Origin: Haliotis rubra
Lineage: Eukaryota
Length of the DNA: 64,000 nucleotides
Reading direction: 5' to 3'
NCBI RefSeq assembly: GCF_003918875.1
Contig: NW_025765059.1
Span: 248,001-312,000, forward strand
The first letter of the stretch is position 1, and the number at the start of each line of letters is the position of its first letter. Under the pieces are notes generated by a model. The model was given only the letters and a program-made list of their open reading frames with translations, had not been told where the DNA came from and made no database searches. The position numbers were made by a program, and so were the translations under genes. Below are positions 26,301-30,100 of this stretch, one piece after another.

Positions 26301-26844
26301 GCTTGGTGCCACTGGTGGAGAAAAGTTGTGTATGAAAACCCATGAAGTATGACAATGTTACTGCCTATAGCCAAGTCTTTACTGGATTCGAAATGTGCTT
26401 CAAGAAATAATAATGACAACCTCTAAATAAGCTACAATAGCACTGCCTGGCAGCGTTCAATCGTATTATTTGCTTGAAAGACATTTTTCGTAAAGTGACG
26501 GGTCTTGTAGCTTTTTTCAGCAAACACTGAAACACTGAGGCGTCATGCAGGCTGAACAAATTGAATATGAAACAGATCGTGATGGTAATGTAAATATCTG
26601 CATAAAATTCATACATACGCTGCTTTTGCAACCCGAATCTGTGTGGAATTTAGCAAAATTACTCTCATTGTAGGATGGGAGACCTTTCAAAAAGTCCGCC
26701 TGCAAATAAAGTACACAATGAAATATTGATCAAACATTAACCAACATGATGCATACTTCAATTAATATTACATATTACAATCAACTAGCATCATCTGGGC
26801 GCAAATTTGATTTTGACAGCATAGTTAGCTTGCCTACCCACCAT
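17351..26844 (-). CDS. DDA1: DET1- and DDB1-associated protein 1 (100 aa). Exons 26844-26842 (ATG only), 26699-26619, 25393-25342, 19619-19558, 17455-17351
   Basis: Spliced product [100 protein letters not shown] matches the DDA1 family signature ([14 protein letters not shown]; [24 protein letters not shown]). All junctions are GT-AG and phase-consistent (0,0,1,0). Confidence 0.95.
17705..19405. repeat. 46-bp strand-asymmetric minisatellite in DDA1 intron 4
   Basis: Unit ccaccaacccagaccataacctgaactctccctctctatcctgtct, ~37 copies. Confidence 0.95.
20514..21385 (-). pseudogene. DIRS tyrosine recombinase, N-terminally truncated and frameshifted
   Basis: [21 protein letters not shown] (catalytic R), LCPVRAL, HEIRA (HxxR), CFWKS...FANHYL (W, Y); frameshift at ~21065. 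Confidence 0.9.
21385..22267 (-). pseudogene. DIRS reverse transcriptase with a premature stop; RNase H and MT domains absent
   Basis: [46 protein letters not shown] then TAG at ~21605; the frame continues to FYLDD and [14 protein letters not shown], then joins YR sequence directly. Confidence 0.9.
22200..24452 (-). CDS. DIRS gag-like ORF1, intact 750 aa
   Basis: N-terminal Cys/His cluster (CTIC...DPHVVCPSC...CSYC), Ser/Arg/Pro-rich SPRRSP linker, basic RG-rich C-terminus; overlaps the pol ORF as in DIRS elements. Confidence 0.85.
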   Translation of the reverse strand: MMKICTICRLRFSAADPHVVCPSCSTPCAFDSRCSYCINLTNSAFNKDHFSVLRRAADRSRKQGLDMADTLDFPCGQVLSIDPLPSGVLLETPSEEGRGMQSVTSKKRPASPDIPSSQLKSKRASTSSQRRLRTPRAASTSKGKSTKSSRTFSAEIVPAAELGLYDDQPIIIPDIRHKKRPVTATVTSAEITMQPDASTLMSDEIPEGPTVNIAERAPSTSSQTIPDDLMRQIMIMMEGHYRLEKQPTQGPSLREGSNVDSTPEAPPVNVAATTMPPSRRKSQTTSTKDPDVQPSRRRDRSSPSSASFSDTDSDHQTLRKPSRRSYHRSPGPDVEEASRRPSRRTPEPRSSSSRKTSRDYTRASRSYQRSPHRSPRRSTHKRRSPRRSPRHSPRRSPRTSPRRSPHRSAHKSTTRSPQASPDIEIEPHSPPSEEHQPLINDAGIEDDGGIIFSDAEIRYWMVNNLDLSSPSKSGNPAQTYLMKEDDAGAVTLPPIDPIAAVPQNLDTAFHKATKVQTPHLPNFHAKKFSTHNMDPFFKAQDIDENYKLISDVKNKNYKIDDRKLVQIETMTRRMFFGLNRSRTINETLITRFRNTTSEDDRMIYSALLMQKKDQQFLTDHLTSVSAALTLARRQGLLASCSWGENFTAPLYTAPWSSPSIFDGGIDKVSKEVTKDSREVLMIKSMDTLASVIRQTSQRYSGRSKFTGLQRARDRKIASSRGKDSFRRPYGNYRGGSGRGRTPRGSRNYKR
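24927..25096 (-). mobile_element. tRNA-derived SINE family B
   Basis: A box (gtagcctagtgg) and B box (ggttcgattccc); tail gctggaatattgctaaaagcggcgtaaaac-(actc)n. Confidence 0.9.
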
Positions 26845-27118
26845 TTTGGCTCAAAACTTCCTGTCCATTCAGACATGCGCAACCGGAAAACATTTTTGTA
26901 TTACTTGTGTTAAGACATATTTCTACTGAAACCATTGTTATAAGTGGAGGCAAAATAGAACAATCAAATATGACAAAAAAAATCCAAATAATAATTTTGA
27001 ACATCTTATGTTAATTTTAGGTACGTTTGTTATTGACAATGTTGTCTTTTATGAAATAAAAGAAATATTATATGCTTCTTATTATAAGTCGTTAAAGGCA
27101 TATCACCATCAGTTCAAG
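26845..27118. promoter_or_regulatory. Putative bidirectional promoter shared by DDA1 and COPS2
   Basis: Divergent ATGs 274 bp apart; ETS-like acttcctg (~26856) and accggaaa (~26882); NRF1-like catgcgca (~26874); YY1-like aaaatgg at the DDA1 start. Confidence 0.7.
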
Positions 27119-30100
27119 ATGTCGGACGATGATTTTATGTGCGATGACGACGAAGAGTATGATTTGGTAAGTAGAATTTGACAATTTTATGACATGAACT
27201 GCCATCAGTGGTTCCCCTTCCTCTGTGGCCAAAGCTTTTTTGAATAAAAATGCCGAATCCTATGCCTGTCAGCAGGATGTCAACAGCAACTCAGTTCAAT
27301 CATGAGTTGGGTTGCGAACACAAAACACAGTAGAGAGTAGTAACACTAGTAATAAATAGTAAGAATGTTCTGCAGCTTATAACTACAAGGTGTAGCTTAC
27401 ACCGATATTTGGCTGCAAGCTCTTGCTCTCGCTTTACTGATCTCAGGGGTTTCTCCGATCCTTAAGGGTAGTTACGTTTGGTAAGGGCAGGTAATCCAGA
27501 ATTTAATCCCAAGAAAATCTTTCCGGTCAAGCTCCCATATGACCTAGTAGTAGTAATTAATATAATAGTTATTTCATTCATACACCATTTGGCAACAGTG
27601 CACTTTAGAGTGGTGACTGGGGTAGCTTGCAATATCGCAAATTGGCTTAGGGTGCCAACTGGGCCCTCAACAGTCTCGCATTGTAGAAATTTTATCGTTT
27701 TTTGTCATATTTGGGGTCAATTTTGTTTGTTTTAAGGTAGGTTATCCTAAACTTCATCCTTAGCTAATGGATGCCCTATCCGATCAAGCATCCCATGAAA
27801 ATCATCAGCATTCATCTGATCAGATGCCCCTTCACGAACCTTGGGTTAGGCACCATTGTTTATTAATCAAATGACCATTTTCAATCCTTAGGATTAGTTG
27901 AAAAGTAAGGTAAGACTACAAAATACCGGATACCTTCCGCCATCTTTGAAAGCATGCGAGTTTACTTAGGGTTAGGGTAAGGTTTAGGGTTAGGGTGACG
28001 TGACACTAAACAATATGGCTGGTCGGTATCCTGTATTCTGTAGGTGTACCAAAAGTAATATATGAGTTATTGATGAATAAATACAATGTAATCTGAGGAA
28101 ACTTTGAAATTGGTTTTGTTTATAAAGTTTTTCAGTTTCATGTAGAAAATGTCTACTTTACAAGCACAAAAGTGAACATCTGGATGCTGATGACTTCGCC
28201 AAACACTATTTGTGATAGAGCCCATGGTCCCGTGTTTTGGCTCATACCATTATATCATCAGCCCAGCTGATCTTAAGGCAGGTAGGGCGGTGGGGTAGCT
28301 TAGTGGTTAAAGCGGTCGTTGTGAAGCCACACGGAAGACCCGGGTTTGATACCCCTCATGTGTACTATGTGTGAAGCCCATTTCTGGTGTCCCCAGCCGT
28401 GATACTGCTGGAATATTGCTAAAAGTGGCATAAAATTCAACTCACTCACTCATTCTTAAAGCATTTCAGCTCAAGTTTGATCCTCAGTAGCGCATTAATT
28501 GAAATCGAAAAATGTGCAGTACTTCCAATCTGGATGCAGCAATAGAAACATTTTTACCTCACTATCCAAAAATGATAAGATAGCCAGCCCTTTAAAAAAG
28601 GCATGTTTCTATGTGTCCTTATGGTAACTTCACTAATGTGACTATTAGGTAATTTGGAATGGACTGTACGACTAGTACCAGTTTCTATCACTGCACATGA
28701 ATTGGGAAGAAATTCACACCCACTACTACTTGATTACTTTCCTAGTAAGCAATCCCTTGCACACGGGAGACCTCATCTTGTCAAAATTTTGGGTTTGCTG
28801 TGTATTTTTTAACCATAAGTCAGATTAATGTTACCAGTTTTCAGTGCAGCCTCAGTGCTGATTGTTCTAGTTGCAGTCGTTGCAATTATTACCGAACTTA
28901 TTACCTACCCGAAACCACTAACATAATAGAGCCACAAAATATGTTTTATACGTTTGTCCAATTAAGAAAATATTAATTTTACAGAGCTACAGATAACTTT
29001 TTGGGTCATTGAGTTATGTACTCGCTTGTGTTCATCTCAGTTGGGTAACCTACTTTTCCTTTAAGTAACCAAATAAATTGTACTCACCTCACTCAAACTC
29101 AATTGGGTATTTTGCCATTTTCCATTAATTTTTAAAATAATCATATAGTTTAAATGTTAGTGTTTGTTATTTATATTTGATCTGTAATATGAGAAACGAT
29201 AAGAAAGACTGCAAGTTGTCATGTTCATGTCCTGAAATACAACCTCTCAATATACCTAAGTTATTTTATCTATCCACTGGTACCCAAGCTAAGATTTGAC
29301 GTGTTTGTGTGTACACAAGTAAGATCACATTTATTGAGTATTTACAAAAATTCAAGCGTACTTGTACGCAACAGACTTAATAGGAATTGAGTTTTCACAT
29401 AAATATTTTCGTAATTTACGCAGATATGCAGCTTATCTGTACCTCTGATTTTATCTTTTGGAAGTGTCCTGAGACATTCACAAACGAAAGAGTCATATGA
29501 GTGAAAGAGAAACATTGCATGTGCAGGGGTGGAAATAAGCCATTGGCCGACGTCCGAGTCCAGTGTTTTTTTCTGTCGGGCAAGCAAATTGTATACCAGA
29601 CTGTACCATTGTCCAGTTGACTTTCCAATGTTGATTATGTTGTTTATTTAAAAAATGAACAAGAAAATCGGCTGGTATAGTGGAAAACTTATCAGGGCAA
29701 GTGATTTTATATGTGCCACTGTGCCGGAGTACACTAGTAATTTTAAAGTTATTTCCATCCCTGATGTGAATGAAATTCAACACCGAATGCTCTTGTCTAA
29801 CCCTACATATTACAGAGGTGGTGGGCAAGCTGGTACACATGCACTTGACTAGATACATGTCCACCTTAATTGCTTAGTACCTTGTATTTGTTACAAACTT
29901 ATATTACTTTTACTTACTCATTCAAAACCTTTGTGTTGGGCACAGACACTTTTATTCAATATCAAAGCCTGAACCACCAAATAAATAGTCATGCACAACC
30001 TGATAGCAACTTTCATGTTTCTAGTTTTTCGCAGACCCGTGAAGGTCCAGGTTAGAATGAATCTTCAGTAACCCATGCTTGTCATAAGAGGCGACTACCA

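Follow-up and report, generated by a model that had tools for sequence, protein, structure and literature searches.

A conserved head-to-head DDA1-COPS2 gene pair with a short, possibly shared promoter region in abalone and other spiralians

Does the head-to-head arrangement of DDA1 and COPS2 in the abalone Haliotis rubra reflect an old gene pair that shares a promoter region, or are the two genes neighbors for other reasons? The question is raised by a stretch of 64,000 nucleotides (NCBI RefSeq assembly GCF_003918875.1, contig NW_025765059.1, positions 248,001 to 312,000 of the forward strand), which is referred to here as the window and numbered from its first letter. DDA1 binds DDB1 in CUL4-RING ligases (CRL4), and CSN2, the COP9 signalosome (CSN) subunit encoded by COPS2, contacts the cullin/RBX1 arm during deneddylation. 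An initial annotation, made from the sequence alone, had proposed that one bidirectional promoter may couple the ligase part to its off-switch. The evidence presented below favors, with a probability of about 0.6, a conserved divergent pair with one short shared promoter region, of which the two genes tend to be co-expressed.

Reading of the sequence placed the 5' ends of DDA1 (minus strand) and COPS2 (plus strand) at 26619-27166, where the two genes diverge. The start codons, at 26844-26842 for DDA1 and at 27119 for COPS2, are separated by 274 bp. The genes lie on opposite strands with no intervening gene, and no other exon or long open reading frame (ORF) could be identified in the spacer. 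The base positions of both start codons, the one-codon DDA1 exon and the 274-bp spacing, as given in the initial annotation, are exact in the sequence. The 5' ends of the two genes are composed of the following features:

26619-26699, minus strand: DDA1 exon 2, 27 codons encoding the DDB1-binding N-terminal segment, followed by GTATGT; identified by Pfam, PDB and an RNA joint
26700-26841, minus strand: DDA1 intron 1, 142 nt, GT..AG borders, acceptor cag
26842-26861, minus strand: DDA1 exon 1, a short 5' untranslated region (5'UTR, at least 17 nt seen) and a one-codon coding part, ATG at 26844-26842
26845-27118, no strand: spacer between the two start codons, 274 bp, GC content 0.29, 4 CpG
27108-27166, plus strand: COPS2 exon 1, 5'UTR of at least 5-11 nt, ATG at 27119, 16 codons, donor GTAAGT after 27166; from RNA contigs
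30428-30544, plus strand: COPS2 exon 2, from an RNA joint, contig pieces and translation

The DDA1 start codon directly abuts GTGGGT, with the donor GT at 26841-26840. Exon 2 alone matched the Pfam family PF10172 (DET1- and DDB1-associated protein 1) with 30.5 bits and an E-value of 4e-7, above the curated cut-off of 24, and the DDA1 chains in solved structures of DDB1 complexes (PDB) with an E-value of 1e-8, which identifies the gene as a member of the DDA1 family. In COPS2, the exon at 41159-41263 is nearly identical to the CSN2 chains of solved signalosome structures (E 1e-18) and another exon matches the PCI domain (Pfam). The COPS2 exons are 87-100% identical to genes of other species annotated with PCI and COPS2_C domains. 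The gene therefore encodes COP9 signalosome subunit 2 and is orthologous to CSN2, not to other PCI proteins.

DDA1 orthologs were collected by a word search with the full-length Haliotis asinina protein, and their contigs were inspected. A word search with a 70-amino-acid stop-free stretch around exon 2 returned two proteins only, including the full-length H. asinina query. In every positive annotated locus, a gene with PCI and COPS2_C domains (441-455 amino acids) is located directly upstream of DDA1 on the opposite strand, and the N-terminus MSD..DFMCDD..YDL of COPS2 is kept in all positive loci. In the second Octopus assembly, the COPS2 model has 521 amino acids and PCI only. The pairing was found in the following genomes and contigs, with the distance between the start codons:

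Haliotis asinina: 273 bp, annotated contig
Patella caerulea: 235 bp, annotated contig
Crassostrea angulata and a second Crassostrea assembly: 115 bp, annotated contigs
Lineus longissimus (nemertean): 91 bp, annotated contig
Lingula anatina (brachiopod): 35 bp by the annotated start, 62 bp from the conserved MSD start
Owenia fusiformis (annelid): 231 bp, annotated contig
Octopus, two assemblies: 546 and 530 bp, annotated contigs
Unannotated assembly L002: 490 bp, by tblastn
Metagenome contigs L049, L051 and L054: pairing present, by a scan with the DDA1 alignment

Using tblastn with single exon peptides from the window, COPS2 exons 1, 2, 5 and 8 were placed in the expected order and on the expected strand. 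The metagenome scan covered 80 loci, which were mostly mRNA-like contigs or too short. L049 resembles L002, the DDA1 of L051 is annelid-like and that of L054 is like those of heterodont bivalves.

Thus, the pair is kept in 10 named assemblies from four phyla (Mollusca, Annelida, Nemertea and Brachiopoda), that is, in every named spiralian that was sampled. The comparison across molluscs, annelids and brachiopods that the initial annotation had suggested shows the pairing recurring in all of them, and in a nemertean as well, with start-codon gaps of 35-546 bp. The outer neighbors are different genes: RPS8 in Lineus, an arrestin gene in Crassostrea, RPL37 and an F-box gene in Lingula, and a homeobox gene in Owenia. 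Since these differ between phyla, the local gene order has been reshuffled around a retained pair. DDA1-COPS2 behaves as a conserved microsyntenic pair, with adjacency and orientation kept and surroundings not kept, within Spiralia only. Judged from these sequences, the pairing was probably already present in the ancestor shared by these spiralian phyla, or is older still. Just past COPS2 in the Lingula anatina locus (L008 1-787) there is another gene with PCI and COPS2_C domains, 270 amino acids long and cut by the end of the locus, and this gene may be a tandem duplicate.

The spacer of H. rubra is AT-rich and is not a CpG island. Two conserved elements could be distinguished in it:

26862-26930, no strand: DDA1-proximal conserved block, defined by conservation against H. 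asinina and by motif recurrence in other phyla
27081-27097, plus strand: COPS2-proximal 17-mer with the TATA-like TATAAG at 27083-27088, fully identical in H. asinina

In the DDA1-proximal block, 67 of 69 positions are identical between H. rubra and H. asinina (97%), compared with 145 of 177 (82%) in the remaining spacer (Fisher P 0.0016). For reference, introns of the window are 72-86% identical to those of H. asinina, and the DNA around the spacer matches at about 86%. Next to DDA1, the ETS-like and NRF1-like motifs AGGAAGT (minus strand, 26856-26862), CATGCGCA (26874-26881) and CCGGAA (26883-26888) were found. At the other end, TATAAG is located 25-31 nt ahead of the starts of the COPS2 transcript contigs, which is the usual distance from a TATA element to the start.

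The recurrence of motifs was counted over eight independent lineages and compared with the mean in shuffled spacers. The ETS core was present in 4/8 lineages (0.71 in shuffles), NRF1-like sites in 4/8 (0.05 in shuffles) and the CRE motif TGACGT in 5/8 (0.76 in shuffles). TATA-like strings, present in four of the eight (4.25 in shuffles), are no commoner than in shuffled spacers. Owenia has both full NRF1 sites and palindromic CRE sites; Lineus has the former and Lingula the latter. The ETS-like and NRF1-like motifs claimed earlier for the spacer are therefore present as sequence matches and recur in other phyla, and the predicted set of ETS, NRF1-like and CRE motifs is of the housekeeping, TATA-poor promoter type. 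The abalone region itself looks like a combination of two parts, a putative activator block close to DDA1 and a TATA-like core element close to COPS2.

A YY1-like motif had also been assigned to the spacer. A match does exist, but only where CAAAATGG around the DDA1 start codon runs into the splice donor, and there it is inseparable from an invertebrate Kozak context plus donor; the strict YY1 consensus was found inside none of the spacers examined. The ATG followed directly by GT is kept in Haliotis, Patella, Lineus, Lingula, Owenia, Octopus, L002 and L051; the Crassostrea equivalent is ATGAAGATG followed by GT. The length class of DDA1 intron 1, 131-155 nt, is common to H. asinina, Patella, Lingula, L002 and L051. 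In the cockroach Periplaneta americana, DDA1 has an annotated 3-nt coding piece (L011 9702-9704). As the one-codon exon is present in spiralians and in Periplaneta, the intron right behind the DDA1 start codon is ancient. The context CAA[AG]ATGGTG[AG]G is common to Haliotis, Patella, Lingula, Owenia, L002, L051 and Branchiostoma. The YY1/TISU element lies no more than 30 nt from the transcription start site (TSS) and is a mark of mRNAs whose 5'UTR is very short (PMC2518114; PMC8384218). Such a reading would fit the short DDA1 leader. An invertebrate Kozak context plus splice donor also explains the motif, because COPS2 likewise has CAAAATG or CAAGATG at its start.

To place transcripts on the locus, assembled transcriptome contigs from four small runs were aligned to positions 25000-30999 of the window. 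Of the sampled words, the four runs contain about 6%, close to the share that the exons in the stretch are estimated to contribute. The joint between 25393 and 26619, connecting DDA1 exons 3 and 2, was found in all four runs and reads CT..AC, corresponding to GT..AG on the minus strand. The joint between 27165/6 and 30427/8, connecting COPS2 exons 1 and 2 with GT..AG borders, was likewise found in 4/4 runs. As these contigs are spliced, they are derived from RNA. It is concluded that DDA1 and COPS2 are both intact, spliced and expressed.

The COPS2 contigs have lengths of 1.5-2.3 kb and their 5' ends lie 52-58 nt ahead of the donor, at 27108-27114. No upstream non-coding COPS2 exon was found in the contigs of the four runs, since nothing is recorded upstream of these positions. 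For the DDA1 contigs of runs X1 and X3, the depth in the bin 26800-26999 equals the contig depth multiplied by 20/200, and therefore ∼20 nt of DDA1 exon 1 (26842-26861) are present in them. The contig 5' ends at ∼26861 for DDA1, estimated from depth, and at 27108-27114 for COPS2 are thus at most about 250 bp apart and lie in the spacer. The initial annotation had named TSSs mapping far apart via upstream exons as an outcome that would speak against it; the COPS2 contigs do start in exon 1, while exact TSSs are not readable from contigs.

Taken together, these observations suggest how the pair might work. Shared or interleaved ETS, NRF1 and CRE activator sites and one nucleosome-free region would serve both genes, and DDA1 and COPS2 would tend to switch on together. 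A break between the promoters would damage both genes, and the pair would thereby be retained. In Haliotis, the main conserved activator block would lie at most about 90 bp from the DDA1 start codon, and COPS2 would initiate about 250 bp from the DDA1 end, behind the conserved TATA-like element. The likely consequence would be a coordinated supply of the DDB1-bound CRL4 accessory subunit DDA1 and of CSN2, which docks on the cullin/RBX1 arm. Among conserved microsyntenic pairs, those arranged 5'-5' with very short spacers are the co-regulated class (PMC3514665). With no more than 62-115 bp between the start codons in Lingula, Lineus and Crassostrea, the two promoters must physically overlap in these animals. 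Of the proposal that one bidirectional promoter couples the ligase part to its off-switch, the conserved pair, the short spacer and the motifs have thus been substantiated, while shared drive and co-expression are what we infer from them.

Several observations weigh against a shared promoter that was selected for. In Haliotis, the conserved motif block is found at the DDA1 end only and COPS2 has its own TATA-like element ∼250 bp away, and two core promoters therefore fit this arrangement as well as one shared promoter. Coverage of DDA1 exon 1 is derived from bin-depth arithmetic in two of the four runs, with no listed joint, and assembled contigs cannot fix the TSS, the strand or the expression level. 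Outside Spiralia, the pairing was not observed. In the lancelet Branchiostoma belcheri, no COPS2 was found within 10 kb upstream of DDA1, where the 5' part of DDA1 is repeated in tandem instead; in Periplaneta americana, the head-to-head neighbor of DDA1 is an EcKL-type kinase gene and not COPS2; and in the sea spider Pycnogonum litorale, no COPS2 exon was found in the 10 kb upstream of DDA1. In mammals, fused gene models of ribosomal L34 (MRPL34) and DDA1 reveal a different neighbor of DDA1. As the two genes are not adjacent in the sampled chordate, arthropods and mammals, animals do well without the linkage. In addition, eleven spiralian-like metagenome contigs contained neither the ATG exon nor COPS2 in the 0.8-4.7 kb upstream and add no support; these were counted as uninformative because the first DDA1 intron can be as long as about 1.7 kb, as in Owenia.

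These points lead to the strongest alternative, namely that the pair is old but was retained passively, as the breakpoint target is tiny and any break destroys a promoter, and that the kinship between CRL4 and CSN is coincidental. This is possible, although on balance it is considered unlikely. It is consistent with spacers of only 35-546 bp, with the loss of the linkage without visible harm in arthropods and chordates, and with the different core elements at the two Haliotis ends, an ETS/NRF1 block and a TATA-like element. Furthermore, hundreds of conserved pairs are known (PMC3514665), so that a functionally related one is expected now and then. What speaks against passive retention is that the pair is kept in every named spiralian sampled (10 assemblies, four phyla) and its outer neighbors are not. 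This includes Octopus, the genome of which is heavily rearranged. Moreover, both products act in one enzyme cycle, and in PDB structures DDA1 is found together with DDB1, and CSN2 is found in CSN-cullin complexes. The conserved divergent pair with a shared promoter region is therefore preferred.

A second alternative concerns the age of the pair, which could predate Spiralia (bilaterian or metazoan) and have been lost independently in the sampled ecdysozoan and chordate lineages. The start context shared with Branchiostoma and the one-codon exon shared with Periplaneta indicate that the 5' architecture of DDA1 is ancient. In contrast, COPS2 is missing from the 10 kb upstream of DDA1 in each of the three named non-spiralian genomes, and an older origin is doubtful. 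The named non-spiralian sample consists of these three genomes and contains no cnidarian, echinoderm, hemichordate, priapulid, flatworm or rotifer. In termite-like metagenome contigs, no COPS2 was found beside DDA1. Human COPS2 is located on chromosome 15. Human DDA1 is located at 19p13.11 (PMC4991419).

Two side observations were made on these DDA1 loci. In Branchiostoma belcheri, DDA1 exons 1-3 are present twice in tandem (L007 8268-9345 and 10001-13783) with the same CAAGATGGTGGG start context, which is either a duplication or an assembly artefact. The metagenome contigs L063, L064 and L067, and probably L046 and L065, contain a vertebrate-type DDA1 with up to 97% identity to a lizard protein; L063, L064 and L067 (also L046 and L065) may be human contaminants and, after having passed through the bulk scans, were excluded.

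A stronger version of the preferred reading is that DDA1-COPS2 is a selected co-expression module, in which the amount of DDA1 is tied transcriptionally to the cullin-docking subunit of CSN in spiralians and perhaps already in the bilaterian ancestor. This would have to be regarded as speculative and is improbable on the present evidence.

Finally, chance adjacency peculiar to this genome or assembly, an outcome that the initial annotation had named as refuting and that might come to mind as about a tenth of the genes in many animal genomes are head to head, is excluded for practical purposes by the conservation of the same arrangement across Mollusca, Annelida, Nemertea and Brachiopoda in independent assemblies and by the spliced RNA contigs, which confirm both 5' exons in place.

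The remaining exons of DDA1 and COPS2 were mapped exon by exon, using patterns and reading of the sequence:

25342-25393, minus strand: DDA1 exon 3, 17 codons and 1 nt; from an RNA joint, the sequence and a weak Pfam DDA1 match
19558-19619, minus strand: DDA1 exon 4, same reading as the matching part of H. asinina DDA1
17351-17455, minus strand: DDA1 exon 5, coding part with the stop codon, one residue different from H. asinina DDA1
31420-43997, plus strand: remaining COPS2 exons, from the PDB match to CSN2, the PCI domain and mRNA contigs; located at about 31420, 31815, 32368-32535, 32800, 40400, 41159-41263, 41580, 42245, 42880 and 43850-43997, borders being approximate except for the start-end pairs given

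The five coding pieces of DDA1 (3 + 81 + 52 + 62 + 105 nt) add up to 100 codons and, when compared exon by exon, differ from the H. asinina DDA1 annotation (P0001) in a single residue. The expectation that DDA1 is easily missed by annotation was not borne out, as H. asinina and dozens of invertebrate genomes have an annotated DDA1. The coding span of COPS2, 27119-43997, comprises twelve coding exons.

The introns of both genes contain repeats and other elements. In DDA1 intron 4, a 46-bp tandem repeat with 37 copies and 94% matches, C-rich on one strand, is located at 17708-19403, and H. asinina has a related array (about 86%) at the corresponding position (L001 24191-24739). DDA1 intron 3 contains a retroelement with long ORFs (759 amino acids and others) on the minus strand at 20500-24500; a Pfam scan of these ORFs gave nothing useful. 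According to the exon map, regular splicing of exon 3 to exon 4 across this intron yields the H. asinina protein sequence. Inside a COPS2 intron, a 5-kb GC-rich block is present at 34000-39000 (GC content 0.52-0.65, against about 0.40 around it), and its ORFs of 183-273 amino acids had no Pfam match. Short interspersed repeats at 25000-25199, 28200-28599 and 30000-30399 occur in thousands of transcriptome contigs with a summed word depth of tens of thousands, and related copies were identified by translation near 40750-41500.

Among known systems, DDA1-COPS2 most resembles HSPE1-HSPD1 (HSP10/HSP60), in which the partners of one machine are arranged 5'-5' with a spacer of <1 kb and kept across distant animals, and which is cited as the model for co-regulation in conserved microsyntenic pairs (PMC3514665). 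However, HSPE1-HSPD1 is kept from human to fungi and unicellular holozoans, with a shared promoter demonstrated by experiment, whereas DDA1-COPS2 has so far been seen in spiralians only, is absent in the sampled chordate and arthropods, and is known here from sequence. With the co-regulation class of conserved ancestral microsyntenic pairs (CAMPs) it has in common that the genes are non-paralogous and divergent, that their orientation is kept and that the gap is very short. It is probably not among the CAMPs defined with human or across superphyla, because human DDA1 and COPS2 are unlinked. The vocabulary of ETS, NRF1-like and CRE motifs and the short divergent housekeeping promoter are reminiscent of mammalian bidirectional promoters with GABP/ETS, NRF1 and YY1 sites, as is the TISU/YY1-like context at a start codon near the TSS (PMC2518114; PMC8384218). 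Unlike these, the abalone spacer is AT-rich, with its GC content of 0.29, 4 CpG and no CpG island, and its sites are predicted ones.

In full-text literature searches combining DDA1 with COPS2 or CSN2, synteny, head-to-head and bidirectional promoter, no description of the linkage was found. In human cells, DDA1 has been linked functionally to CSN2 via NF-kB and CSN2 signaling (PMC4991419). The general phenomenon of conserved divergent pairs is already known (PMC3514665), and the DDA1-COPS2 instance is new; the finding leaves knowledge of this kind of system unchanged. Conserved divergent pairs are among the few cases in which animal gene order carries information, and here the partners belong to one enzyme cycle, one being a subunit of the CUL4-DDB1 ligase and the other of the deneddylase by which cullin ligases are parked. 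The pair is a clean microsynteny marker for spiralian genomics, and its compact promoter of about 60-550 bp, depending on the species, is testable in oyster, abalone and annelid. If the tentative co-expression module were true, it would point to an unstudied direct coupling of DDA1 to the binding of CSN to CRL4 or its release from it. With a linkage that is ∼half a billion years old, kept in four phyla and dispensable in arthropods and chordates, the pair offers a natural comparison on the question of whether the levels of CRL4 and CSN have to be coupled.

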